Below are positions 23,761 through 64,000 of a DNA stretch of 64,000 nucleotides, one piece after another (the first letter of the stretch is position 1; the number at the start of each line of letters is the position of its first letter). Position numbers and translations under genes: made by a program. Below the pieces are notes generated by a model that saw only the letters and a list, made by a program, of their open reading frames with translations, was not told the DNA's origin and did not search any database. Origin of the DNA: Fimbriosthenelais zetlandica (taxonomy: Eukaryota); assembly GCA_977030845.1 (NCBI GenBank), contig OZ365109.1, forward strand, positions 54,498,001 to 54,562,000, read 5' to 3'.

Positions 23761-26010
23761 TTACTATTTTTACTGGTGGATTAATTTGTGGGTACTATGT
23801 TTGGCGGAGTCTGGAACCGAGACCTGGAAGGAGTGACAGGTTCTGGATGCTGGAAATAAGGTGCTAATATAATTAGAGGCCTTAATATGAATCTGTTACA
23901 AATTAGTTTCTCCCATTCCAAATGAGAATCTCCGGTTATTCTTTGCAAATCTCGAGGGGATGGGATGAACTTTTAATTATATATAGCCTATAATGTTATA
24001 GCATATAGCCAGGTCGGAATATTATTTTCCAATAATTATTTACATAGACGTAAAAGAGGAGGGCTCATTTAATTAATATAGTAATATATATATAGGGATT
24101 AGGCCTAAGCGAATTGATACAGTAACAATTGATACCGCGTTCAATTGTCTGTTAAAAAATCTTTTTTCATTGAAGCAAGTAAATTTGTAGCAAATAATCA
24201 TACAATCGACCCTCATCATCGTTCACTCCCAATGTCGTCATGCCTTATAAATCATCCAGGCACGCCCGGGAGGAACGTGATCATGTGCCCTGATTGAGGC
24301 TGGGAGGTCGCTGGAGGACGGTAGAGGGTGAGAGGCGCAGGGAAATGGGTTGCTAGGAGACACACAGACACTCTGGAGAAAGCTGGTAGAGGGTGGTAGG
24401 TCAGGTGGTGTCTAGGTGGGAGGTGTCTGGTAAGAGGGTATCATGACGTGACATGACGTCAGGGGGCCTCCTCCAGGGTGGGCGGGACGTGCAGGTAACT
24501 GGTGGTAGGCTATAAGGGGCGGTGGGAGTGGTCACTGTATTATGTGTGGAGGGATGGTATCAGCGACTGCCTTATCTCAATATTGGATCCTCCTCCCATG
24601 TCTATCTCATGTTGGTATGTTGTGCCTTGGTATCCAAGGGGTAGAACACACCGTGCAAGCAATGTGAGCCAAGTATATCGGCATACTTTCCCTTTGCCAG
24701 TAGCCTACACGCCACAAGTACGCCTAGTCTTGCCTACAATCATTGACGTTGGCATTTATTCCTTCAACAGTTAGGCCCCACTCTGAACTGAGAAACATAA
24801 TTATGGGTGTACATAACACTTCTGTGTTATATAACTTATATAGGCCTAAGGACCAATTATATGTAGGCTACTCGTGAAAGCATCCAATGACCCGGAGAAT
24901 GATGCACGACACGTGCTTCTATACTATTATAGGTCGTACTGTATGTAAGTAGTAGCCTATAGTGCTTAGAAATATGAACCAGGCACTGGAAGTGCAACGT
25001 CAAGCGTCTGAGTCTCGACAGCTGTCGGCTATTCATTTATGATATTTTCAATGCATCAAAATACTAGTTAAGCCCTCTAAAAAGCAATCAGGATGACGAG
25101 ATATATGTGCAGTTAATGCACCAACGTTTCAAACTTATAGGCATTTCCCTTTTAAAACTATTCTGACTTTTATTTGAAGTCGAGGGCTGAAGAACCCTCA
25201 AATCGAAAAATTTAGCTCCTCGCCTTAATTGCTTAAAGTGCCAGGGCTTGAGATACTGTCTGAGATACCTCTCACCCTGAGAGGTAGCATATGTGAACCC
25301 CTAGGAGCCCAGGTAAGTAATAACCCTGTCCCTCCGGACCATGTGAATGGTCTAATGGTGGGTAAGGGAATGTATGTCCCAAAATCCTCTGGAGAAACCA
25401 CCCATAGAATTCATGCCGTTTGAAACCAAGGTGTCACCGACATCATGCATAAGAAGTTATCGTTAGCTATTGAACTTTAAGAGTAAAAAAAGATGTTGTC
25501 TTCGAAAGTAGGGTTTAGCCTTAATTTTCTTATACTATTTTGAAGTATCGAATTTATGGAAATATAACGTTTTGCTAGATAATTCAATGTTATAATAAGA
25601 ACTTTCTAAACGTCTTCTGTACGTTAGCTAATCACAATCCTGCTTTAGAGGAGGGGTTACGACACTACACAGTCAAGATATCACCAAGTACTGATTTAAA
25701 GGAGAGATGAGTTAAAACTTTCATGGGGACAAATTATGTTTTAATGGCAATAACTAACTTTACTTTTCATACAGGATTGTAGAGACATGTATTGCACAAT
25801 CGAGGCGAAGGAAATGCATTGCACCTTCGGCCAATACCATGTGCTGCCACCTACTGTTTACTCTGTCAAACAGTAGCTGGTTCCACTGATTGACTGTGGA
25901 AATGACTTATAATAGAAAACAACCCACAGTCTCTGACTATATGCCTACTCTATGCGAGCCATTGTCATTCGCTGCCATATTTTATTAAATGTGAGTCTAA
26001 GAATAGAAAT

Positions 26011-28535
26011 TTACAGATGAACTTTAGCTGCAGCCCTTCTAAGAATATCTCTCGAGCTCATCCTTTTGAAGACCTTGGGTTCGAGATGCCTCCCTCGAGC
26101 CAAGTCCAGCTCGGAGGGTTTCTTGGACAGGAAAACAGCATCAAAAACAGTGTTTTCAATGATTTTGTTGTCTATGAAGCCTACATTTTTTATCATTTTT
26201 GGGAGTTTGGTTCTATCCTGGAATTCTTCGGTGAAGGGTTCTGGGCCTTTAGGACCATCTGAGTCCCATTCATATCCCCAGGTCTGAGACGCAACAAGCA
26301 TGGCGCGGAGAATGGGGTCATTCAGGTACGGAACTGGAAATGAGTAAAAATTGATAGCTTCATGGAATTCTTATATTATCGCCTTTATAGAATAGTCATA
26401 GACGGATCCATATCTCAATTTGTGGACATAGGACCTATGCCTAAATCTTGGGCCACAATGCTGGACACCCCATCCCCTTCCACGTTTCACAGAACTTACC
26501 CGCCCATATAAAAATTATATGAATTCATACCTTCAAAACCGCTCATGAAACCTCCTGGTTTGAGAAGGCGCATGATTTCATCGAGCACCATTTCCGCCTG
26601 CTCCTTTGGCATCTCGTGAAGGACATAGGTGTATTGGACAAGGTCAAAAGTCCCTGCTTCAAAAGACGTGTTCTCTCCATTGTCTTGGTAGAACTTAACA
26701 TTCTTCAGACCGCGGGCTTCTTTCCACAAATTGCAGAAACTAGAATAGATTTTAATTCAAAATAATTAGAAATAGTCGTAGACATAATACCCGTAGGTTA
26801 TGAGGTTCTTGGCTGAATTAAATATTCCTAAGCTAATCCTATTTTAAATCAATATAAAAGTATTAGGTCTGATTGATAGGCTATACTAGCTTTGCTATAC
26901 TAGCTTGATAAAAAACAACGTTATTTTCTGGTTTTCTAGTAAATATTGTTTTCGATATCATACCGGATGTATGGTGCTGCAAGGTCAATGCCAATGACCT
27001 CAGCGTCCGGGAAAAGCTCTGCATAAACGAGGGCTGAGAAGCAGTTTCCGGTTCCAATATCCAAAATGCGTTTAAATTTCTGGTCACCATGGATGCGTTT
27101 TATCCAATCCTGGAAGGTAAACAAAATATCTCCGAGTCATTTATATTCTATTTATGAATAATTAAACTTCATGATTGAAAATGCAAATTTAAGATGCCTT
27201 TAGCTCACCCTGAGAATATCTTCTTTAAGGAAGTTGAATTTGGTATAGCCACAATATGAGACTCGGACTGTCTGACCGTTGAGGTAACCACCAGGAAGAA
27301 AGTGAACGTACGCCCTGGTATAGTGGTAGGGGATCTTTAATGGGGTCTGGTTGTTGGGTGGGCGTACATCAAGATCGTTCTCCTCCCCTTCAAACTTTGG
27401 GGTCAACTTAGTGTAGTTGGTGAAAAACTCGACGTAGTTATCGATATCTGAGAAACCCTCTTTGAAAGCCTGCATAAAATGTTAGTTTTTTTTAGTATAG
27501 AAATCAGACGAGATCGAATACTATAATACAAAATGTTGAAATCCATTTGAAATGTTGATTTGATATAAAAATGTGCTTACCCTGAGATAAACATATTTCT
27601 CAAATGGAACCTCTGGGTGGAGAACATCGGCTTCGCTGTCTATAACGGGAGGTTCAGGAGCGAATTCAGGAACTCTGGCCACCATGATCATATGCATAAA
27701 TGAGTCAAGGTCTTTGAACCACTCAATGCCCTGTTCAGAAATAAAATAATTATGATAGTTAAAAACATAAGTTAATGACAGAAAAAAGCAAATGGGGTGG
27801 GGTGCAACCTCAACGATCCCCGCTGACCCTGGAAAGGAATGAGAAAGGGCTAGAGATGAAGGGGTGGGTGGGAGACATTAATTACCTGACCATTCCAATT
27901 AATACCAAGAAAATCCTCCCAGAGGCTGGTGTCTCTAGCCTTGTCATTCTTCATGATGTCCTGCACCATTTTGTCCAGGGAGTCCACATTGACTGCTGAG
28001 CCTTCTGGCAGGGTCCATGTCCAGTCATCTAACTTTACCTCCTCCTGAAGGCGTTCATTCAGCTGGCTAAATTCATCATAGTGACGGTGAATGGAACCAG
28101 ATGCTGAATTATTGTCTTCCTTCTCAACCTATAACATTGATTCAAAAGTAATAATTTTGATTAAACTGGAAATTCATTAACAAATGTATAATGTCGTAAA
28201 TTTATATTTATGTCCACTGTCTGCCGCCTGCTAGTGGCAGTTTTCACGACCTATGCCGTGAACAATAAATTATGAGGATTTTCCATTTGACTTTTGTCTT
28301 GAAGTCAGATTTGCGATGTTTCTGGAAAATCAGAAGACAAATAAAATTTTCTCTAAATTCAAATAATTACAGTGAAGTCAATGAAGTAGACAGGTATCCC
28401 TCTGTAGTCAGCTTCCTTCAGTGACTGTACTTTGGCTGAGGTTGGTTTTCCCTCAATGTAATCAGGGAAATACGAAGAATGAACAAGACAGGCAAAGCCT
28501 AGAAGTAACAACGATATAATCTTAACGGTATTCAT
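26011..28535 (-). CDS. Signal-peptide-bearing PX-like domain + class I SAM-dependent methyltransferase (~498 aa)
   Basis: Exons 28535-28371, 28128-27886, 27730-27581, 27469-27209, 27109-26964, 26739-26531 and 26333-26011 join in phase (1497 nt). SAM motif I is RILDIGTGNC, followed by EVIGIDLA, FDLV..TYVLHEMP and LLKPGG. The N-terminus is MNTVKIISLLLLGFACLVHS, with an in-frame upstream stop. Confidence 0.85.
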
Positions 28536-28576
28536 TGTAGCCCCATGTATGACAGCGCAAAATTGATGGACAGTAC

Positions 28577-28584
28577 TTTATATA
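28577..28584 (-). promoter_or_regulatory. TATA box of the methyltransferase gene
   Basis: TATATAAA on the minus strand, ~42 nt upstream of the ATG at 28535. Confidence 0.55.
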
Positions 28585-29334: not shown

Positions 29335-32300
29335 CTATTGTAGGAGGTCGGTATAGAGTGTGGTGGCGTTGTGGGTTGTATAAGATGCTTGAAGGTCTAG
29401 TTGATTCTGGGTCGGTATCACTCCATCTGTTACCACGTGGAAGGGTATGAACGCTATCTTCCCATTTGACCAAACCTGAAAGACAAAATCAACACCGTAA
29501 AATTACAATTAAATTACATCGAAAACTTTGAATTATCACGAAATCCGGTCATTTAAAAATGGCATTTAAGACAGTATAAGTGTATATGAATTATTATTAC
29601 AGTACTTGTTGGTATAAATTCCTATATTCGGAGATATAGCCTAGGGTAAAATCAGATTTATTCTTCTTTAATATAACATCTTGAGTGAAATAAGACTTAC
29701 CACAGTGAGCTGGGCGCCATGTTTATAGTTTGGTTGGAAGGCGATCAGAAAAGGCACTGTGTCAGGTTCACCTTGAACAAAGCCACTGAAATAAAGGGAA
29801 GTAGACAGTCTGAATATACGATCAAACATTGACATTTATATTTCCACAGTGTTTATATCTATAACAACTAGGCCTATAACCCTGGGTGTATATCCTGACC
29901 CATAGAAGAGCCTATTGCTGCAGTAGATAATATATGTTAAAACATTACTCAAATTACTCAGAATTCGCCATCAGAATTTAACATCTATTTATTTTTAGTT
30001 AAAACGTTTATACAGATTACTGAAATGTAATCCAAACCAGTTACTCACCAAGGAATGATTTCTAGCGAGGGGTTGAGCTGGGTCTGGAAGATGGCTATTT
30101 GAGGAGTGTTTGTGAACTGTACAGCTAGTCGGGTACCAGTAGCGTCCCATTCCATGGCCTGTACATTACCACCCACCTTCACAGTCCGCTCACAGTCCTC
30201 TAACTCTACAGCTGACACGTCTATACTAGTAACTGCTACCTTAGATCCACCTGTAATTAAAGGCTAAACTCAAGGCATTGGCACAATGATTTCTTTAAGT
30301 TAAAGCATTCTAAATCAAAGATACTTTATTTTCGAAATATGAAAAGTCTAAATATTTAAAGGTTAGTTCGAATGCATAATTTAAAAAGATTTGTTTCTCA
30401 CTGAAATTTGGCTCACTTTTAAATTCTGACTAAAATACAGATTGATGAACTAAAATTACAAACCGATTGATGGCTCGGTCTCACTGAATGTCTTCGCGAA
30501 TGATAGAGAGTAGATGGTGGGTTCCTCGGCCTGGGAAAAAAGAAGAACGCTACCATCTGGTGACCAGCACGCACACTGAAAATAAAAAAAAATAAACTCA
30601 TCATGCTGCTAATAAGAGCAGGGATGTAACTCAGGAAATCAAGAAAGCTTCAAGAACCATGTTTCACTGACATTAATTAAATGAAAGAATTATTTATTTG
30701 GTGTGGAATTTCCATCGTTTTCTCCTTGTTGTTTGGACCATCTTCTCTAATAGAGGCAATTCTGTGATATATCATATCTGTAATTGCCTCTGAGACTAAA
30801 ATAAAATCTCCCATAAGAAGTTTCAAAATGCAAGTATATTTTCCTCATTTCCAAGGTTAAAATCCGTTAATTGAATCAAAGATATTGTATCCTTGCATAA
30901 GACAAGAATCTGTTTGAGAAAATGGAAATTGCATTCACGAATATGAGAAAATGAAGGAACTTGAACACAAACCTGACATCTAGTGAGTAAATGGGTCCAC
31001 TTCTCACAGGTCCAATTACGAGACTCCCAAACCCTGAACACTCTGGAGGGACACGTGGCCAATAATTTACTCCCGTCTAGAGTCCACTTCAATGACGTCA
31101 CTCCCCCTCCGCCAACACGACGTACCGGTACACAAGTTTCTGTGGCTACATTCCACACCTGAATAAGAGAAATTCTGAGTTGTAAACCTAAACATGTGAT
31201 CTGGCTTCAATACGTGGGGATATGCTTCTATCCATTATCCGGCGACCTTCCACATGAGAATGAGGGAGAGGGGAAGGTTGGTTAGTTAGATAGTTAGTTA
31301 GTCTTATTTTAATAGTTATTTTACACCCTGTCTCCACGCGTCCCTGTCCAGCGGGTCGATGCTGATCAGGTCGCATAGCATAGATATAACAAATCAAATA
31401 CATGTACTGTACTCGCCATCATGGCTGTATCTGCAGGAGAGGCTGAGATGAGTATGCCACCCTGTGGGCTCCAGGCCAGGCTTGTGATGGGAGCATGACT
31501 ACATTTACTTAAGATCTGTACCGAACTCGTAGACGGTCTGTAATAACATGAATTAGTCATTTTAAAAATTTAAAGAAGATTATTCAGTGGAACGTACTCT
31601 ATTGCTCAATTAATGTTCTGATAAATTTATATTTGTAATTAAACAAAATGCCGGATTTCTAGCAAAATTCAATTGAAGAAAAAAAGGAGATTTACCTGGT
31701 GGCCAGGGAGTTGGGATCCACGTGCCATACTAAGATACAGGACTGGCAGGCTACAGCCAACACTGAGGCAGAGAATGGTCTAGATAAAATCAAAATTAAA
31801 TTTTATGAAATCAATGCTCACAAAACTGCCAGTAAATGCCAGTATGGTCACATTTTTTTTTAGTTAGAATTTTCATAAAGCCTGCTGGGTGAATACCAGC
31901 TCACACTCTTGATTACTCAAGTTTACGTATGATTTTCAGCTGGAGGTTCTTTCTAAGTGCATTAATACATTGCCTTCAGCTCGGGGGATTGAACCGCCGA
32001 CCCTTCGATCATTGGTGAACCACCCTGTGTGAGCTGGCGTTCTAACCAACTGAGCTAACTCCCCTCCATGGATTTTTGAATGAATTCATTAATGTAGTTG
32101 AAACAAATAATTTCCTTTACCTCCAGGCGAGGTCAGCCACTGACTTTTGTAGTTTATGTTTGAGGATGGGAATTATGTCTGTCTTGCCTTCTGTGTGTAC
32201 ACGGATAGAATCATCTTTGAGAGCTACAGCGTACTTGGTGGTGTGTGGGTGCCAGGCAAAGCAGCGAATAACACTCTCATTCCTAAAATATGATAAAAGG

Positions 32301-33811: not shown

Positions 33812-36800
33812 ATGGACGGAGCGGATGAGGTAATGACACCATAACTAATACTTTCCTTGTCATATACTTTGTTGTTGTCTACTATTTTTAAGTTGTGTTA
33901 GTTGTAGCCCAGTCTTTATACCTGCTGAGACTGGACCTGGGGCTGGGCCCCGACCTGGGCCTGGCCGGCCCGGCCTGTGGCCTGGCAGGCTCCCGGCCCT
34001 GTCTCAGGGTCAGGCGCGGTACATAGTGCGAGAGGTCCCGGGTTCAATTCCTCAAGCAGTCCTCAGTTCTCTACCCAAAGCTGCTAAATTGGTTTTATAT
34101 ATGGATAATATGCTGTAACAATACAGGCCACCTTTAACAGAGAAATACGGTACAGGCTACTTTGAAATGCCAAGGCAAAGGCAAATCATAGATAATATGG
34201 GCAAATGAACCCTTGGCGACCCCAAATATTCAACCTGTGTGAATAAATTAAACATATAACTATGCCTAGTCATTGACATTAATTATTGCTCCCAGGTCTC
34301 TAGACTAGTCTAGTGTACGGGTAAACATATAGTAATATTAATAAAGTTATACTGATATTAGTTGTTTTTGCATAATTTTTCATGATCTCTTTGCCTTTGG
34401 ACTTTGCAGACGAAACAGGTCCCAGAAGATCTGCAAGAGAAAGATCAGCTGGCAGAGAATCTCAATCATGCCCCTCCTGCCATTCCATCAGCTCCAAAAC
34501 CAAAGCCCAAGAAAGGCCAGTTTTTGTTTTGTATTACACATGTAGTACTATTACTTTCTATTTAATTATTCTTCCTTCATAAAAAAAATTAAGTATTTAC
34601 CCATAACTTACAACAGGTATTTTTTGCTGAAATTAATTAGGCTATAGGTAAAGTCAAATTTCTAGATTTTCTCTATGCAAACAATTATTATTAATTTTTA
34701 GATTGAATTTATTTGGTATGGTAGACCTAAATGTAGGCATATGTATTTTTTTTAACGATTCTCTATTCATTTCAGTTTAAAGAATTCCAGTTCGTATGAA
34801 TTATTTTGCAGCTCCTGAATTACCAGTGTTTGAGCGGAGAAACTGGATGATCCATTTACATTACATACGAAAGGAATTCGACACATGCAAAGTACTAATT
34901 CAGGAACAGCTGGCCGAAACTAATGGCTTGTGCGAGTATGCCGTTTATGTTCAAGGTGGGTATAAATTAATATTATTATTTGAACTTAAGAATTACAAAC
35001 AATGGATATATACAGTACTGTATTTACGAAATAACTTAGAACTTTACTTCTGACTTCAGCCTTGATATTCAGACAAGAAGGTCGCATACAGGAGTCACTA
35101 GAACTTTTCCAGACGTGCACACTTCTAAATCCGCAAAGTGCAGAGAACTTAAAGCAGGTGGCCAGATCTCTGTAAGTATAGGCCCTAGAATAAGAAAGAA
35201 TAGTTGGTTCATCTTCTAAGGTTCAAATAACGTAAGAATTTGTTTAATAATAAGTAATTTTGGAATCTGTCATCACCCCAGATCCAGTTCATTGTTTACT
35301 GAAGTTTAAACTTCTATTTCAGATTTTTACTAGCCAGGCATAAAGCGGCAATTGACGTTTACAATGAAGCAGCAAAAATGACAGAGAGAGACTGGGTAAG
35401 CTCAAAGAAACACGAACAAAATATATTTGTTATTATGTGTATAATAATTAATATTTACATAATATAATTATGCTTGTCTTATTTCATGGTTGTAGATGAA
35501 GGTTTTTTCTTCATTTTCAGGAAATTTCACACAATCAAGGCGTTTGTTATATGTATTTAAAAGATTACGACAAGGCAAAAGAATCGCTGAAGCAGGCCAT
35601 AGGATTCAATAGAAATGACATTTCTTATGTTATGCTTGGGAAAATCTATCTTGTGGAGGGTGATGTCCATATGGCCATCGACATTTACAAAAGAGCTATC
35701 GAGTAAGTAAAATCACTGGGCCCTCCTTCTTATTTACCTGGCAATATTCTTTTCCGTAAAATTTTGAATGCAAGTATTATGCCTATCCAGTGCTTAACGC
35801 GAACCTCAAGATTCTGTATTCGGATGTGTATTCTACATCGCTACCAGTAGATGAATTTTTTTCCCAAACAGATTTTCACCTGAAAATGCAGAATTACTGA
35901 CTACATTGGGCCTTCTATATATGCAGGTATGTCCTGGGAAATCAATGTGAATTGGTTCTTAATCTTTATATTTCAAAAAGAAATCCGAGAACATCTGAGA
36001 ATCTACATCATGTATTTTAACCTAGACATACATGTAGATTGTTAAATGCAACTTCATCCACACTAGTATTCCAAATGTTAATTTTTTTCTAGGTTGGACA
36101 GTATCAGAAAGGTTTTGAGCACCTGGGTAATGCCCTTACCTATGAACCTACCAACGTCCGTGCGATCCTGGCGGCCGGCAGTATGATGCAGGCTCATGGT
36201 GATTTTGATGTTGCCCTGACCAAGTATAGAGTGGCCGCTGTAGAAACGCCCGAGTCCGCTCCATTATGGAATAACATAGCCATGTGCTTCTTTGGTAGAA
36301 CGAAATTTGTTGCTGTGAGTATTTAAGTGACAATATAATTTAAGATATAGTAAGATAGGCCTACTAAATGGAATTTTAGAATTTGAATTCTTGGTTCGTT
36401 AATATCGCCTAGTTACTTTATTTCGCCAGATTTTATCATAATTTACCAATAAGGCAAAATTGTGTATATAATAAATTTAACTAGAAATGTTCCTTACAAA
36501 GTTCTCTACTTCAATCAATCAATAAATGGCATTAGAACTTCCCGTCTTCCATGCAACCTCTTCCATTACATCCAAGTTACTAAAATCTGTCTTCTTCACC
36601 TTTACCAGGCTATAAGTTGCTTAAAGAGGGCTGTCTACCTGGCACCATTTGACTGGAAGATCTTGTACAACCTTGGTCTGGTACACTTAACTATGCACCA
36701 GTACGCTTCAGCCTTCCATTTCCTATCAGCAGCCATTAATCTCCGACCCAAAATGGGACAGCTATTTATGCTCTTAGCTGGTGAGGACTTATTAACGACT

Positions 36801-38351
36801 TCTTTAATTTATGCATATAATTATAATTATTTATTTTCTACTTTATATATAAAGTAATACAAACAATTAGTTAATGTATATTTATGGAATTAGACAGAAA
36901 AAATATTGATTGTACCTGGTTTTGCATATTAATTTTTCTCAAGCAATTACTTTACTATAATAGCTTATATCTAGCTGAGCTCATTTTGTTTCTAGCATTA
37001 CCATTATAACATTCTTGATTAAGTTGGCATTTCCATGTCCATTAATTTCACTTTTGTTTTCTTATTTAAAATGCCTAATATACTACATTCATTTCAGTGG
37101 CACTCACACATCTCGAGGATCCGGATAATGCCAAACAGGCGTATGAACAAGCTGCTACCTTAGAATCGTAAGTTTTGTCTGTTAATCTTTGGCTACGTCA
37201 GTGAGCTTGGATGCGCTCAAAATATAAGGACATGTATTTACAGAACATGTAAAAGATAATTTTGAATATATATTTCTGGGCGAGAATTTCCTCTTCCATT
37301 TCACAAAAAAATATGCTTATATATACGCATTTTGTTTGTATGGTCGTAAACATCTCTGGTGTATTTTATATTTGATCTTTTTCAGCCGTGATCCACTAGT
37401 GAGCCTGAATTATGCCATATTCCTGTACAACGCAGGAGAGAGGAAAGCAGCGGCGAAGCAATTTAACCATTTTGAACAGAAGTTCCAAACACAAAAACTC
37501 GCTAATCCTAACGATATTGATCAAGAGGTAGGCCTTTAAATAAAGGGGTTTCTCCTTTATGATTCAACATTTCCACAATTTTTGTTTAGTAAAAACGAAA
37601 ATTCCGTTGACAGCATTGAGCTTTTTTTCATAAACCATGAAGAGAAAAACTAGAAACTTATAGATTCTGTACTATCTTACATGTACTTAGGCGAACATAA
37701 TTAAACAAATCGACCAGTAATCTAAGAAAATGCAATTTAATTTATGGAAATATTGTTGTCTTTACAGATAGTAGATATGGCTGCGAAGTTGGGTCCTGCC
37801 CTCCAGGTCGGGGAGAGTTTGGTATGGAAGGATCAGCAACCTCCAAAACACACTCAACATCAAGACATGCCTCAGAAACCTTCAGCGCAAAGGTATGATT
37901 CATCGATCATTCATCTAAATTGCAATTTCTTAGTATTAAAATTTAAGAATTGTCTTTCCTTCTACACTCCCCTGGAGTTTTTGTAATGCCACTGTTTTTG
38001 TAGAAACCTCCTGTCAATTTAAATTTAAATTTAAGTGCGTGTAGTCGGGTGGGGGATTAGAAATTAAAAAACATTTCTAGTGACTCCCGTCCAGGGAATT
38101 CATATATAAGGTTCCAATTTTCAGCTAGGTTCTCTTCCTCACGCATTAAGCTAAGTTTTGCAACTATAGTAGGCGTAGGCTGTAATGTATATACTATATA
38201 CCTAACATTGGACTTTTTCTGTAACAGGGGAGGGCCAGTTCTTGCTGGAGCCAAACCATCTGGATTTAATGATGACCGTAAGAATGGCGCCCTACCATCA
38301 TCTCAAACAGGCGGAAAAGTATCGGAAAGTGCAGCTCAACCCTCATCTTAG
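33812..38351 (+). CDS. BBS4: Bardet-Biedl syndrome 4 protein (BBSome TPR subunit)
   Basis: Spliced exons encode [105 protein letters not shown] and [17 protein letters not shown], closely matching BBS4. First exon is 33812-33829; stop is 38349-38351. Confidence 0.97.
34026..34051 (+). pseudogene. 3' fragment of a tRNA-Pro-like sequence in BBS4 intron 1
   Basis: GTGCGAGAGGTCCCGGGTTCAATTCC matches the 3' anticodon stem, variable loop and T arm of eukaryotic tRNA-Pro. The 5' half is absent. Confidence 0.5.
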
Positions 38352-57800: not shown

Positions 57801-60449
57801 CATATCGTTCACGAAGGATGCCAACCTCTCTTTTGGTCTTTCACCGTCAAATTTTGGTGGTGATTATGAACAAATGTAAGTGAATATGAAATTTTGCTTC
57901 TCAGTGAACACGAAATTCTGTCAATCCTGTCCCAGGACAGTTTTCTCTGATAATGGCGTGCCTTGTGTCAGACCTATGGCTTGTTTCTTTTTCTGTGAAG
58001 TGTAACCGAATTCAAGGAAGGCGATTCATTTGAGTGTATTTTGGACACCAGTGGTCTGAAATGTGATTGGTATGGCGTCCCTGTTCTCGATCAAGATATT
58101 AAAGTCATCTTCAAACAAAACAATGAAGTGGTAAGTATCGCTTAAGCATGTACCAGTTCACATGAAACGAGTGTCCTATTCCGCCCCCACTATTCTTCAT
58201 CATTCTTTGCGGAAAATACGGCCCCATCAGTTCTTACATGGATTTCAGACTTTAGCCAATTGTTACAGATTTCTAGGGGTTGTGCACTAGATATATAACG
58301 ATGTGGACCAGCGTTCTCCACCAAGTGATGGAGACAGATAACAGAATCATGGTTGGACGAAAGGGGTAAATTCTTTCTGATTTTTGACAGGTGAATGAGT
58401 GTTTGGACTACTACAAGGGTGGCGGTCTGTCACCGTACATAAGGGGCTGTAACATGGAATTACGTCTACATGAAATGAACACAGATGAAGCTCAAAGAAT
58501 TCTCTCGCAGGTAATGCCATTCTTCACCAAGTAAATATCAAGTAAATCGTAGCTATAAACTTTAATCCAATGGCCGCGATGTTTTTTTTTAAATCACGCC
58601 AGGAAGCGACGTTTTATGCGTTGCTGACAAATCAGAGGTCAAAAATCCCTTCTTGCTAGGTCTGCTTTGTACAAATGCTTAGCGCAAACGTCTAACAAGT
58701 CTCGTATAAGTTGTTTAAAACATGGTGCTCTCCATGATATTCTTATTCCGGGGAAAATCGTCAAATTTAGCATTTGAGTAATCTTTACGTCTGAATTTTT
58801 TGTTTCTGAGAAATCAGGTATTTAAGATCAGAACTACCTCGGGAAATAACTTACCTGGTGTATCATATCCTTTTAACCATTTCCTTCTTCAGTCCATTTC
58901 CACAAAGAAAAGGTACATTGTGGCTGGCATGACTACCAGTAAGAAAAAGAAGGACTGTAAGAAGATTCTACAGGAGGTGAAGACAGATCTAATATCCCGC
59001 CTAGAGAACCACCTGGAGGAGTCCAAAGCCATCATAGATGATGCTCAAACCCATGTGGAGAAGAGGTGGGTTCTTCATATTGAAATATTTATATTTTCAC
59101 TCTGTTCGACACAAAACGATCCAGTAGTTTTAAAAGGTTATTGTTATACTCTTCACACTTATATTTCTGATACATGTAAACCCTTTTTGGTTTGGAATAG
59201 GACAACAGCAACCAAATGAGCCATGTGGCCCATTGCACAACTGTCGCCCGGCCATTGAAATTACAAAGCTGACAGTTGAATCTCTAATTAATTAGGATAT
59301 CTGTACATATTTGGATTCTTCTATAATTATTAAGCTTTTCCGGAGGTGTTGTAGCAGCCCAGCTTGAGGTTTACCGACGAAATCTGCAGCTGTTAGTGAC
59401 GAACCTCCCCTCATCATGGGCCTTCATTCCCATCAACCTAACCACAAATGAGGTAAGTTATCTGCCCTTAAATTGGTCAAGATTTCCTATATCTTCTACT
59501 TTTCTACTTATTTTTTTTACGTATAAAATCAAAATTGTAAATCTTGGATTGATTTGAAAATAGGTGAAAGGCGACTTTGTAAGCTCTTTCTAACTGTAAG
59601 TCTCTCTGTCTGCCTCTCTAATTGTCTGTCTGCCTGTCTCTTTCTCATCATCTCTGACCTCTCCCTCATAATCTCTATCTACCTCTGTCAGACATCTCTG
59701 TGCCTCCCTCTGCATCTTTCCCTCTCCCCTCTATCTGCCTCTCGAACATCTGTGCCTCTGTCTACCTCTCCCCTCTCTCTCCCTCTGTCTTTCGTTCCCC
59801 ATGCACGATCTCAAAGAAAAGATGTACTGTGATAATCACTGCATTAATATTGCTATGAGGTAATCTAAAATAGACTTACTCCTCTGTCATTTAGGGACAC
59901 GGTAAGCTCTGCTCCACGCTACATCTCAACCAGAATCAAAGTCTGGCCTTCGGAGACGGTTCTGGCTCCTCTCAACTTGTCTCTGATATCTTGAAGAAAC
60001 TCCAGGAAAAGGAAAGCAAAGAAAAGTTACCTAAAATACTCTCCAGATCCAATTACCGCGATTTCCTGGACGTCAATGAAGGTCAACTTGCTGCTGCTCT
60101 CAAGCTCATTTCCTACTGGGTAAATAGTCACTTTTGGTTAGAATGCATTTGAAGAATACAATATCCGAAATATTTGGGACGAGAGAAAGGCGATAGGCTT
60201 AGACTTTTCCCTGTGGACAATTGAAAATTGTATTTTATTTGGCAGGGGCTGGTCTTATTTGTGCCAGACATGGACCCGTGGGTTGCCATATTAGATGTGC
60301 CTTGGTTCGTCAACATGCTGAAAAAGCTGGAGAAAGTTCCCGACTCCCGAGCAGGACTCAATGTGAGGGGACTGGCGCCTGACACTCCCGTGTGGTCGGA
60401 CAAAGAACTGGGAAAATTATGTGCTGAAAATTCCATGGAACAGACCAAG
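51810..60449 (+). CDS. Large ROCO-like protein: Cys-type LRRs, degenerate Roc-like GTPase fold interrupted by SPRY-like modules, start of a COR-like domain (5' partial, 1091 aa seen; continues beyond the last exon found)
   Basis: 26 exons splice in frame (3273 nt, no stop). LRR: EVVDLSGCVNLTDKGIEWLAE and KISIDGCVKVSQHGV. Roc-like: KVLVH..., EWNLAGTHF, HVVIPVDL, RYIVAGMT and FIPINLTTNEGHGKL. COR-like: LAAALKLISYWGLVLFV and VAILDVPWFVNMLKKL. The gene model is solid; the domain identity rests on by-eye similarity. Confidence 0.65.
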
Positions 60450-60509
60450 GTAGGAGTACTGTCATACCTTACTACTGGAGAGCCTCACATAGTACCTAAT
60501 TACATTGTT

Positions 60510-61331
60510 TTTGTATGACAGACTGGCAACAGAGAGGTTATTGGGTTTTTAATAAATTTTATTAAATGAATAAAGATTGATAAGGTAGCACCAGTGGCAA
60601 CTACCCTAAATGTATGAGAATGGAGTTTTAAACATATTTGTGAAACGTAAGTTTAACATAGTTTGGAAAATGAAATCGAACAATAAAGGTAAGTTTTAAA
60701 GTTACACATCGAGATGTAAAACGTTTAACATGAAATGTTATAGAATTGACCTTACAGTGGTAGAGCTATATGGGATGACCTGGAAAAGGCGAGGAGGATG
60801 CGAGATGGGAAGATTAGGAAGAGGAGAAAAGAAAATGGGGAGGGTTGGGTGGGAAAGAAAATTGATGTGTGTCGGAGCCTGAGCGAGATAGGTGTTGACC
60901 CTGTGGTGGTCAGTTGTGAAAGAGGTGGAGTATAGAGGTGCTCTCTAGGAGGAACCGGAAGAGGAGGTACCGGAAGGAGAGGATGGGAAAGGCAAAGATG
61001 ATGGTTGCGTCTTCATACAAATTTCATCTCGCGGGCTAGAGATGAGAGCTTTGTATGACAGACTGGCAACAGAGAGGTTATTGGGTTTTTAATAAATTTT
61101 ATTAAATGAATAAAGATTGATAAGGTAGCACCAGTGGCAACTACCCTAAATGTATGAGAATGGAGTTTTAAACATATTTGTGAAACGTAAGTTTAACATA
61201 GTTTGGAAAATGAAATCGAACAATAAAGGTAAGTTTTAAAGTTACACATCGAGATGTAAAACGTTTAACATGAAATGTTATAGAATTGACCTTACAGTGG
61301 TAGAGCTATATGGGATGACCTGGAAAAGGCG
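60510..61331. repeat. Apparently identical ~282-bp direct repeats (60510-60791 and 61050-61331) around a purine-rich ~260-bp spacer
   Basis: TTGTATGACAGACTGGCAACAGAGAGG...GACCTGGAAAAGGCG occurs twice with a 540-bp offset. Confidence 0.95.
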
Positions 61332-61385
61332 CCATAACGAGGCCCTGTTAACAGGACGAGTGTCAGCCCATAGAGAGAAAACACA

Positions 61386-63460
61386 GGCCTAGTCAGCACA
61401 CGCTGATCCTAGGTGATGAGATTGTCACAGATTATATGAACACTGATGTGGGAGGCCTAGTCAGCACACGCTGATCCTAGGTGATGAGATTGTCACAGAT
61501 TATATGAACACTGATGTGGGAGGCCTAGTCAGCACACGCTGATCCTAGGTGATGAGATTGTCACAGATTTATATGAGCACTGATGTGGGAAGCCTAGTCA
61601 GCACACGCTGATCCTAGGTGATGAGATTGTCACTGATATATATGAGCACTGATGTGGGAGGCCTAGTCAGCACACGCTGATGCTAGGTGAAGAGATTGTC
61701 ACAGATTTATATGAGCACTGATGTGGGAAGCCTAGTCAGCACACGCTGATCCTAGGTGATGAGATTGTCACAGATTTATATGAGCACTGATGTGGGAAGC
61801 CTAGTCAGCACACGCTGATCCTAGGTGATGAGATTGTCACAGATTTATATGAACAGTGATGTGGGAAGCCTAATCAGCACACGCTGATCCTAGGTGATGA
61901 GATTGTCACAGATTTATATGAGCACTGATGTGGGAAGCCTAGTCAGCACACGCTGATACTAGGTGATGAGATTGTCATTGATATATATGAGCACTGATGT
62001 GGGAGGCCTAGTCAGCAGACGCTGATCCTAGGTGAAGAGATTGTCACAGATTATATGAACAGTGATGTGGGAAGCCTAGTCAGCACACGCTGATCCTAGG
62101 TGATGAGATTGTCACTGATATATATGAGCACTGATGTGGGAGGCCTAGTCAGCACACGCTGATCCTAGGTGATGAGATTGTCACAGATTATATGAACACT
62201 GATGTGGGAGGCCTATTCAGCACACGCTGATCCTAGGTGATGAGATTGTCACTGATATATATGAGCACTGATGTGGGAAGCCTAGTCAGCACCCGCTGGT
62301 CGTAGGTGATGAGATTGTCACTGATATATATGAACACTGATGTGGGAAGCCTAGTCAGCACACGCTGATCCTAGGTGATGAGATTGTCACTGATATATAT
62401 GAGCACTGATGTGGGAGGCCTAGTCAGCACCCACTGGTCGTAGGTGATGAGATTGTCACTGATATATATGAGCACTGATGTGGGAAGCCTAGTCAGCACA
62501 CGCTGATCCTAGGTGATGAGATTGTCACTGATATATATGAGCACTGATGTGGGAAGCCTAGTCAGCACACGCTGATCCTAGGTGAAGAGATTGTCACTGA
62601 TATATATGAGCACTGATGTGGGAAGCCTAGTCAGCACACGCTGATCCTAGGTGATTAGATTGTCACTGATATATATATGAGCACTGATGTGGGAGGCCTA
62701 GTCAGCACACGCTGATCCTAGGTGAAGAGATTGTCACTGATATATATGAGCACTGATGTGGGAAGCCTAGTCAGCACCCGCTGGTCGTAGGTGATGAGAT
62801 TGTCACTGATATATATGAGCACTGATGTGGGAGGCGCTGATCCTAGGTGAAGAGATTGTCACAGATTATATGAGCACTGATGTGGGAAGCCTAGTCAGCA
62901 CCCGCTGGTCGTAGGTGATGAGATTATCACTGATATATATGAGCACTGATGTGGGAAGCCTAGTCAGCACACGCTGATCCTAGGTGATGACATTGTCACT
63001 GATATATATATGAGCACTGATGTGGGAGGCCTAGTCAGCACACGCTGATCCTAGGTGATGAGATTGTCACTGATATATATGAACACTGATGTGGGAGGCG
63101 CTGATCCTAGGTGAAGAGATTGTCACAGATTATATGAGCACTGATGTGGGAAGCCTAGTCAGCACACGCTGATCCTAGGTGATGAGATTGTCACTGATAT
63201 ATATGAGCACTGATGTGGGAAGCCTAGTCAGCACCCGCTGGTCGTAGGTGATGAGATTGTCACTGATATATATGAGCACTGATGTGGGAAGCCTAGTCAG
63301 CACACGCTGATCCTAGGTGATGAGATTGACATTGTTTTATATGCACACTGATGTGGGAGGCCTAGTCAGCACCCGCTGATCCTAGGTGATGAGATTGTCA
63401 TTGTTTTATATGAACACTGATGTAGAAGGCCTAGTCAGCACACGCTGATCCTAGGTGATG
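61386..63460. repeat. ~62-66-bp minisatellite, roughly 33 copies
   Basis: Unit GGCCTAGTCAGCACACGCTGATCCTAGGTGATGAGATTGTCACTGATATATATGAGCACTGATGTGGGA, with recurrent variants (ATAT number, CCGCTGGTCGTAGG, and a 14-bp deletion form). Confidence 0.98.
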
Positions 63461-63547
63461 ATAGTGTTATGAATTTTTTGCACAGATTTTTTGATGAGTA
63501 TGGTCATTGTTGATTCGTTGTCGGATTGCAAGCAGAAAACAATAGAA

Positions 63548-64000
63548 ATCGAAGCATTGTGGATATATTGGATAGAAAGGGATTATGACACTGCGAGCAG
63601 AGTACCTTTCGTATAGATGTAAGTGAATTATTCAGACCTGGAGAGGGATTATGACACTGCAAGCAGAGAACCTTCCAATAGTTATCGAAGCATTGTGGAT
63701 ATATTGGATAGAAAGGGATTATGACACTGCGAGCAGAGTACCTTTCGAATAAATGTAAGTGAATTATTTAGACCTGGAGAGGGATTATGACACTGCAAGC
63801 AGAGAACCTTCCAATAGTTAATCGAAGCATTGTGGATATATTGGATAGAAAGGGATTATGACACTGCGAGCAGAGTACCTTTCGTATAGATGTAAGTGAA
63901 TTATTCAGACCTGGAGAGGGATTATGACACTGCAAGCAGAGAACCTTCCAATAGTTAATCGAAGCATTGTGGATATATTGTATAGAAAGGGATTATGACA
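63548..64000. repeat. 136-137-bp satellite running off the right edge
   Basis: ATCGAAGCATTGTGGATATATTG starts at 63548, 63684, 63821 and 63958. Each unit holds two AGGGATTATGACACTGCRAGCAGAG subunits. Confidence 0.95.

Follow-up and report, generated by a model that had tools for sequence, protein, structure and literature searches.

A gene of Fimbriosthenelais zetlandica appears to combine a signal peptide, a PX-like domain and a SAM methyltransferase in one protein, and it raises the question of whether such a combination is real, how it arose and what it might methylate. The gene lies in a stretch of 64,000 nt (contig OZ365109.1, 54,498,001-54,562,000 of the forward strand, assembly GCA_977030845.1), hereafter the window, to which all positions refer. 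It occupies the minus strand from 28535 to 26011, with an ATG at 28535 and a stop codon at 26013-26011, and its 7 exons, all bordered by GT-AG, join into a single frame of 1497 nt encoding 498 aa (Table 1); homology is the only basis for how the exons are joined and for the 5' end. Exons of aladin and BBS4 flank the gene, and paralogues were not found within the 64-kb window. Contamination or a bacterial gene is ruled out by the introns, by these animal neighbours and by the existence of an animal family. The locus is a real seven-exon animal gene.

Table 1. Features of the gene, with positions in the window
Feature	Position	Strand	Content and basis
TATA-like box TATATAAAG	28576..28584	-	Sequence reading; about 45 nt 5' of the ATG; putative promoter element
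Exon 1, aa 1-55	28371..28535	-	Leader, mature N-terminus SYFPDYIEGKP, PX-like strands 1-2; GT donor at 28370
Leader, aa 1-20	28476-28535	-	Top hydropathy of the whole protein at aa 3-18
Exon 2, aa 56-136	27886..28128	-	PX-like strand 3 and helices; IHRHYDEF ... TLPE ... DFLGINWNG
Exon 3, aa 137-186	27581..27730	-	Conserved linker helices RVPEFAPEPP; family conservation
Start of bacteria-shared module (exon 3), VPFEKYVYL, about aa 176	within 27581..27730	-	Bacterial homology from T177/F179/E180
Exon 4, aa 187-273	27209..27469	-	Methyltransferase N-terminal cap IPYHY..VHFLPGGYLNG; helical in full-length model
Exon 5, aa 274-322	26964..27109	-	Rossmann strands 1-2, motif I ILDIGTGNC, motif II acidic residue GIDLAAPYIR
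Exon 6, aa 322-391	26531..26739	-	Rossmann core FYQDNGEN, YTYVLHEMP, LLKPGG; Methyltransf_25/Methyltransf_11 matches
Exon 7, aa 392-498 and stop	26011..26333	-	Final methyltransferase strands, animal-specific insert TWGYEWDSDGPKGPEP, basic tail
35-aa basic tail, aa 464-498	26118-26014	-	Present in this protein only; no counterpart in 81 relatives
AATAAA polyadenylation signal	25981..25986	-	25 nt past the stop; sequence reading; putative function

A representative search with exon 2 gave six weak matches, which led to metagenomic contigs and from these to the family; single-exon searches of the PDB and the Atlas returned nothing useful. The family comprises 149-251 relatives of about 455-500 aa, 40-61% identical to the Fimbriosthenelais protein in alignments that span aa 1-466, and it is abundant in marine metatranscriptomes. 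Its taxonomic distribution, a point that the sequence-only reading had left to be established, takes in the annelid Owenia, the crustaceans Meganyctiphanes (krill) and Tigriopus (copepod), the sea urchin Diadema, the acorn worm Ptychodera and the amphioxus Branchiostoma. Database names of the members are only "uncharacterized" or "UbiE-like", and literature searches returned no paper on an architecture of signal peptide, PX and methyltransferase. The same reading had called the architecture unrecognised; this stands in that the literature searches gave no characterized counterpart, but the architecture is not unique to this genome, being that of a whole uncharacterised family. Of the 112 positions with at least 95% conservation across 81 relatives, the Fimbriosthenelais protein retains 105, a proportion far beyond chance, and its seven departures are conservative changes. 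A transcript contig without interruption exists for the closest relative. We consider, with a probability of roughly 0.6, that the gene encodes a soluble methyltransferase of the secretory pathway, intact and belonging to a family conserved among bilaterians.

The N-terminus consists of MNTVK, in which K5 provides a basic n-region, a 13-residue hydrophobic run and then VHS|SY. Judged heuristically, this fits the pattern expected of a signal peptide, namely a short basic n-region, an h-region of 7-15 hydrophobic residues, small residues at -1/-3 and no further membrane span; a hydropathy scan of the protein found no second hydrophobic stretch. What had been noticed as a signal-peptide-like start is a family-wide feature: 78 of the 81 complete members begin with a hydrophobic leader, about 18 aa long, S, A or G stands at -1 in 62 of 81, the -1/-3 rule is mostly followed, and a conserved SYIPPYxEGxP comes after the leader in the relatives. 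The start itself, earlier judged to be probably real, is upheld by an in-frame stop at codon -15, the first one upstream (TAA, 28580-28578), which lies within the TATA-like TATATAAAG box, by the leader of the relatives and by an in-frame stop 5 codons ahead of the leader Met in one relative's transcript contig. The leader is predicted to be a cleavable signal peptide that would direct entry of the protein to the ER; the mature chain would begin at the conserved SY(I/F)PxY, with a lumenal or secreted location as the predicted outcome. Neither a membrane anchor nor a retention signal was seen, and the six C-termini inspected have no common KDEL-type end.

Some points count against a secretory methyltransferase. 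The mature proteins of the family have no conserved cysteines, which is unusual for extracellular proteins, and the supply of SAM is limited in the lumen and outside cells. In addition, the Fimbriosthenelais protein has four N-x-S/T sites (N61, N204, N226, N345) but none of the three sequons that the family conserves. Those sequons were considered as evidence of a lumenal location and dropped, since besides their absence here they sit in motifs that may be conserved for other reasons.

The PX-like segment of the Fimbriosthenelais protein is marked by the motifs IHRHYDEF, TLPE and DFLGINW. Compared with Pfam PX (PF00787), exon 2 alone scores 17.8 bits (E=0.0049), under the gathering cut-off of 21.6 bits; relatives score 15.8-24.7 bits, two of ten above that cut-off, and the Pfam model matches 28 of 31 members at E<=1, the best at 4.6e-6. 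When a profile of the family's N-domain was compared with the PDB, 24 of the 27 matches were PX domains, with SNX14 as the best (E=7.7e-4). For the structural work, P0116, which is 61% identical to the Fimbriosthenelais protein, and its family alignment served as proxy. The AlphaFold model of its N-domain (pLDDT 91.9) has the topology E-E-E-H-loop-H-H; the top 50 PDB and the top 30 Swiss-Prot matches found with it by Foldseek are all PX, VIA-align superposes it on PX structures with Z of 8 to 9.6 and an rmsd of 2.3-3.0 A over about 95 residues, and the Atlas comparison likewise favours this fold. Profile, Pfam, Foldseek, VIA-align and Atlas therefore concur, and the PX pattern read in the letters is confirmed as a PX fold, the structural part on this relative. 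With the PX domains of the SNX14, SNX19, SNX25, SNX16 and SNX10/11 type the family shares the three strands, helix 1, the Pro-containing loop and helices 2-3, and it also keeps the Tyr/Trp that follows strand 3, as well as the loop's first Pro. It differs in having invariant motifs of its own (SYIPPY, LDPPDFRG, DFLGINW), in standing behind a signal peptide and so, by prediction, on the lumenal or outer side, and in its partner, a methyltransferase in place of BAR, RGS, kinase or SH3 modules.

Elsewhere, PX domains read membranes from the cytosol, and those that are without any one of four ligand residues do not bind PtdIns3P; SNX14, whose ligand set is incomplete, binds no lipid (PMC6449406). 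The N-domain of the family resembles SNX14 in this respect, three of the four PtdIns3P-binding residues being absent in an alignment to SNX14 and SNX16. The Arg-Tyr pair at the junction of strand 3 and helix 1 is replaced by H-R-(S/T/H)-(Y/W), which is HRHY in Fimbriosthenelais; of the PsiPxxPxK loop only Leu-Pro is kept (TLPEGSA in Fimbriosthenelais), its Lys falling in a deletion of 9-13 residues; and the Arg of helix 2 faces a gap against SNX16 and Val/Ser against SNX14. The earlier suggestion that the lipid ligands had been lost (RHY and a deleted distal Arg) agrees with this pattern when it is set against PMC6449406. The protein might still be cytosolic, with an N-terminus that is not a working signal peptide and a PX domain that brings the methyltransferase to endosomal or other membranes, as the usual behaviour of PX domains and a Ptychodera record, in which annotation places about 20 further residues ahead of the leader, would suggest. 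We regard this as very improbable: three of the four ligands are missing, 78 of 81 members have a leader that matches a cleaved signal peptide in length, hydropathy and -1/-3 pattern, and in-frame stops precede the Met in both the Fimbriosthenelais gene and one relative's transcript. As for the role of the PX-derived domain in a secretory enzyme, we can only conjecture: minus the Arg, Lys and Arg it would pack rigidly on the methyltransferase (the full-length model has a pTM of 0.84, which concerns domain packing) and would be a built-in structural or acceptor-recognition module and not a cytosolic membrane reader. PX domains have been treated as readers of endosomal lipids in the cytosol, so that a conserved, ligand-less one behind a signal peptide would show reuse of the fold across the membrane.

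The remainder of the protein is an intact class I SAM methyltransferase, as had been proposed. Exon 6 alone scores 41.8 bits with Methyltransf_25 (cut-off 27) and 40.5 bits with Methyltransf_11 (cut-off 21.2), exon 5 matches Methyltransf_31 and Methyltransf_25, and the Gly-rich motif I (LDIGTGNC) and the acidic residue after strand 2 (GIDL) are present, as is IPYHY..VHFLPGGYL. D290, G292, G294 and D315 in exon 5 are conserved, and in the full-length model the methyltransferase part has a core of alternating strands and helices. By both PDB sequence searches and Foldseek, the closest solved structures are small-molecule methyltransferases (YcgJ 1xxl, Rv2258c, PigF, Coq5, SgvM, RebM/AtmM), with Foldseek E of 1e-11 to 1e-9 and a sequence E of 1.2e-9 to YcgJ; they share the Rossmann-type core with a helical cap, but they are only 13-20% identical in structural alignments and have no leader and no PX, and no substrate-binding residues common to them and the family were established. 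SAM binding and methyl transfer by the Fimbriosthenelais protein are accordingly predictions from its motifs.

A catalytically dead binding protein, or a decaying copy in this genome, seems most unlikely. It is true that motif I reads GTGNC in place of GTGPG, a change found in this protein and its closest relative, and that the C-terminal tail is unique; nevertheless the family-invariant positions are retained as given above, motifs I and II have their acidic residues, none of the residues shared with bacteria is missing, the frame is open and the splice sites are clean.

UbiE/MenG (COQ5) was considered as an identity for the enzyme and ruled out. Pfam Ubie_methyltran covers a portion of the core, the NCBIfam equivalogs for UbiE/MenG reach about 20-24 bits where their cut-offs demand 158-420 bits, and exon-level NCBIfam matches are generic only. 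Animals are not known to make menaquinone, so that a UbiE function is unlikely for an animal protein that carries a signal peptide. The UbiE name looks like a carry-over, and the present result corrects the misleading "UbiE/demethylmenaquinone methyltransferase-like" names.

The nearest kin of the methyltransferase module are enzymes of about 300 aa from Chloroflexota and Nostocales, themselves uncharacterised, with 37-40% identity (e.g. L006, P0142-P0155). Identity spans the whole catalytic module, including the N-terminal cap, where V241, H242, P245, G247, N250 and R255 are conserved in the animals and in the bacterial sister clade; these enzymes have neither leader nor PX-like domain and are without the animal insert at aa 408-421. 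In all, 54 positions are conserved in both groups. In the tree, support is 100 for the animals, 94 for the bacteria and 88 for both together, as sister clades, which give no direction of transfer. The resemblance to microbial enzymes that had been noted in the letters thus rests on a bacterial sister clade. We infer that the module probably passed from bacteria to animals: it would have entered an early bilaterian and later been fused to the leader and PX exons, and the family would then be a likely example of how an ancient bacterial gene became part of a secretory protein of animals. The fuller history, in which a PX domain moved to the lumenal or extracellular side in early bilaterians, lost its phosphoinositide site and was welded to the horizontally acquired methyltransferase, is offered as a tentative scenario, more doubtful than not.

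Animals have very few secreted or lumenal methyltransferases. METTL9, reported in a 2025 preprint as a secreted, N-glycosylated histidine methyltransferase that acts on plasma proteins, is there called the first secreted methyltransferase of animals (bioRxiv 10.64898/2025.12.23.696137). Like the family, it is a SAM methyltransferase with a signal peptide, and it uses the ER-Golgi route; no sequence relation between them was detected, and METTL9 dimerises through disulfides, whereas members of the family share no conserved cysteine and carry a PX-like domain. An extracellular protein methyltransferase with a similar logic, modifying secreted or matrix proteins, would fit the conserved leader and the lack of any visible retention signal, the more so as the reported secretion of METTL9 makes extracellular methylation feasible and SNX5-type PX domains bind peptides (PDB titles). 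It is nonetheless unlikely: among the PDB sequence matches of the methyltransferase part at E<=0.01 there is no METTL9 chain, the closest structures are small-molecule enzymes and the bacterial sister enzymes are without any partner domain.

A different substrate would be expected of a Golgi or ER-lumenal O-methyltransferase behind the O-methylated glycans of invertebrates, whose PX-like domain would serve to bind the glycan or to retain the enzyme on the lumenal membrane. Molluscs and nematodes are the classic makers of such glycans, and the best 120 rows of either family search contain no named mollusc or nematode. The absence of a membrane anchor and of a retention signal also speaks against this role, and so do the putative pocket residues shared with cytosolic bacterial enzymes, which suggest a simple common acceptor. 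On the other side stand the conserved signal peptide, the sugar O-methyltransferases RebM and AtmM among the structural neighbours, and the fact that the enzymes methylating invertebrate glycans are still unidentified (PMC7614267); SAM import into the Golgi is known in plants (bioRxiv 2021.07.06.451061). A role in glycan O-methylation is possible, if rather doubtful.

The best reading is in our opinion a soluble secretory-pathway methyltransferase that would act on a small, probably anionic, acceptor, its location, activity and substrate class being predicted. Such an acceptor is the most likely because the putative pocket residues (H242, R255, R322, R325, R331, H363 and E364) are common to the stand-alone enzymes of Chloroflexota and Nostocales. 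The C-terminal module, class I and of small-molecule type, would then methylate a metabolite, a xenobiotic or a sugar-like group, either in the lumen or extracellularly. The interpretation given in the sequence-only reading is supported to the extent that computation can test it. If the fuller history set out above is true, it would have given animals another family of secreted or lumenal methyltransferases, an ancient one and the second of its kind, and the compound formed could be a metabolite of marine invertebrates, a methylated sugar or a dietary compound that is thereby detoxified. The family offers a concrete candidate for methylation chemistry of marine animals that has so far gone unexplained.

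The gene neighbourhood was also considered as a clue to the substrate, and none is conserved among the bacterial genes examined. One Nostoc gene has MerR and a metal ATPase nearby, an ArsR-like regulator lies near the Dehalococcoidia gene, DinB and a luciferase-like oxygenase accompany another gene, and an SDR is found beside a third.

The protein is best read as a soluble enzyme of the secretory pathway, predicted to methylate a small, probably anionic acceptor. Its gene was read from the minus-strand sequence as seven exons, all with GT-AG borders, which join into one open frame of 1497 nt encoding 498 amino acids. The nearest upstream in-frame stop lies 15 codons before the ATG, within a TATATAAAG box, an AATAAA is located 25 nt past the stop codon, and no second copy is present in the 64-kb window. 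Each of introns 1-4 has phase 0, a pattern compatible with exon shuffling but no proof of it. Contamination as the source was ruled out because exons of aladin and BBS4 lie nearby, as expected of ordinary animal DNA. GC skew reaches about +0.25 at 60001-64000 and ranges from -0.15 to +0.10 elsewhere in the window.

Features of the methyltransferase locus in the window
Feature	Position	Strand	Remark
Methyltransferase gene, exon 1	28535-28371	-	GT-AG
Exon 2	28128-27886	-	GT-AG
Exon 3	27730-27581	-	GT-AG
Exon 4	27469-27209	-	GT-AG
Exon 5	27109-26964	-	GT-AG
Exon 6	26739-26531	-	GT-AG
Exon 7	26333-26011	-	GT-AG
Basic C-terminal tail (aa 464-498)	26014-26118	-	35 aa
Aladin (AAAS) WD repeats, exon-sized ORF, upstream neighbour	30823-31158	-	E=6e-23 against frog chain
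BBS4 (Bardet-Biedl syndrome 4) TPR exon in ORF	36462-36857	+	E=4e-38

The family was reached through single-exon searches, which led to fragments, then to metagenomic contigs and finally to a piece of one of these, L004, used as query. On its own, exon 2 matched Pfam PX below threshold (E=0.0049, 17.8 bits), whereas for exons 5 and 6 the matches to class I methyltransferases were clear. An exhaustive search with exon 2 returned four fragments carrying its motifs, on metagenomic contigs that are eukaryotic and have tiny introns. With a 293-aa stretch of L004 free of interruptions as query, 251 matches were found, mostly of 455-470 aa. Residues 1-466 of the window protein align with family members at 40-61% identity; P0116, a marine metatranscriptome protein, ranks first, and two proteins of Owenia fusiformis (52%) come next. 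Named members among the matches listed come from Owenia (annelid), Meganyctiphanes (krill), Tigriopus (copepod), Diadema (sea urchin), Ptychodera (acorn worm) and Branchiostoma (amphioxus), and the best 120 rows of either family search include no named member from a mollusc, nematode, insect or vertebrate. All bear automatic names only ("uncharacterized", "methyltransferase domain-containing", "UbiE", "demethylmenaquinone methyltransferase-like"), and the window protein itself is absent from the protein collection searched. It retains 105 of the 112 positions conserved in at least 95% of 81 relatives. Its basic tail is found in none of the 81 and could be either a genuine addition in this lineage or the product of reading through where an ancestral stop was lost; the Ptychodera protein has a shorter and different C-terminal extension.

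Some side observations were made on the way. Positions 1-4317 of L004 belong to an animal whose genome is very compact, with only about 60-170 nt separating the genes. Its family member, interrupted by just one tiny intron or frame break, is flanked by a C-terminus resembling histidyl-tRNA synthetase and by a long C2H2 zinc-finger gene. On the metagenomic contigs L002 (541-2208) and L003 the homologue is split by several very short introns, with all called ORF pieces in one frame. The long proteins P0002 (2965 aa) and P0006 (1054 aa) also matched residues 13-47 of exon 2, the former in nine separate stretches and the latter in four; these matches are probably repetitive or coiled-coil.

The sequence-only reading had proposed a signal-peptide-like N-terminus with a probably real start, and the family bears this out. 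The window protein begins with MNTVK, 13 hydrophobic residues and VHS|SY, and contains no further hydrophobic segment; a hydrophobic leader (median 18 residues) is present in 78 of 81 complete members, with S, A or G at -1 in 62/81 and A, V or S at -3 in 61/81, and the conserved SYIPPYxEGxP comes straight after it. The h-regions are not long enough to anchor the protein in a membrane. The P0019 transcript contig has an in-frame TGA five codons ahead of the leader Met, and P0116 is encoded on an intron-free transcript contig. The start codon is therefore very likely as called and entry into the secretory pathway is predicted with it; a cytosolic protein is less likely. The family has no conserved cysteines, six C-termini compared have no KDEL-type end in common, and three sequons conserved in the family are missing from the window protein.

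The PX fold had been proposed from motifs, and structure searches recovered it, so that the refuting outcome named beforehand, a lack of PX-fold matches, did not arise. A profile of 31 family N-domains (A1) gave 27 matches at E of 10 or below against all PDB sequences, 24 of them PX domains, led by SNX14 (7.7e-4), SNX16 and SNX25. The AlphaFold2 model built from A1 (pLDDT 91.9, pTM 0.88) has three strands followed by helices; PX proteins make up all of its best 50 PDB and best 30 Swiss-Prot matches in Foldseek, VIA-align reaches Z of 9.6 with rmsd of 2.3-3.0 A across about 95 residues (102 chains with Z of at least 8), and the best five Atlas clusters are PX. The Pfam PX entry is matched by 28 of the 31 members (best 4.6e-6), and 2 of 10 tested pass the gathering cut-off. 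Pfam mostly misses this part of the family.

PtdIns3P binding by PX domains depends on four side chains, namely an Arg-Tyr pair after strand 3, the PsiPxxPxK-loop Lys and a helix-2 Arg, and no human PX domain that lacks any one of them binds this lipid (Chandra et al., PMC6449406). At the strand 3 site, profile alignments to PDB PX domains place H-R-(S/T/H)-(Y/W) in the family and HRHY in the window protein, and therefore the Arg beside Tyr has been lost. After Leu-Pro the loop is shortened by 9-13 residues and has no Lys, and the helix-2 Arg falls in a gap or is replaced, so that the aromatic residue alone is left. The loss of lipid ligands noticed earlier is borne out in these alignments, and since all three basic residues are missing, the prediction of a "lipid-blind" domain is well-founded. 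Both domains are of known kinds and the relatives' sequences are already public; our literature search found no paper describing the combination of leader, PX and methyltransferase, and a lumenal PX fold would be new.

In the catalytic part, methyltransferase motifs I and II and the YVLHEMP after strand 4 are intact, and the full-length model of P0116 (pLDDT 88.8, pTM 0.84) suggests that it may form a single rigid body with the PX-like part. When prokaryotes were scanned with each species represented by one genome, a Dehalococcoidia protein showed 37% identity throughout the module, cap included; unlike the animal proteins, it has 298 aa and neither leader nor PX. Used as query, it retrieved a small clade of Chloroflexota and Nostocales, then the animal family, then a big drop in score. 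The tree groups the animals (support 100) and the bacteria (94) as sisters (88), a relation that carries no direction, with long-branched outgroups. Moreover, 54 positions conserved to at least 90% are identical in both groups, including H242, R255, R322, R325, R331, H363 and E364. A single old transfer between bacteria and an early bilaterian, after which the methyltransferase would have been fused with leader and PX exons, fits these sequence comparisons.

Among solved structures, the closest are those of small-molecule enzymes (YcgJ, Rv2258c, PigF, Coq5, SgvM, RebM/AtmM, PfPMT); a METTL9-like protein methyltransferase is less likely. A dedicated glycan O-methyltransferase is possible, as the animal enzymes of this kind have not yet been identified (PMC7614267), but the family is apparently absent from molluscs and nematodes within those best 120 rows, and the putative pocket is shared with the bacterial enzymes. 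A small, probably anionic acceptor is preferred because pocket-like residues are common to cytosolic bacterial enzymes, the module has several conserved arginines and its structural kin act on small molecules.

The neighbourhoods of the bacterial sister genes differ from locus to locus, and a metal or metalloid context is not conserved in four other bacterial loci. In one Nostoc genome (L008, 7110-13474) a MerR regulator precedes the sister gene, which also lies close to an HMA-domain P-type ATPase, and an ArsR-like regulator ORF, read by eye, lies near the Dehalococcoidia copy (contig L006, 4995-5471); there are thus hints of a possible metal or metalloid link.
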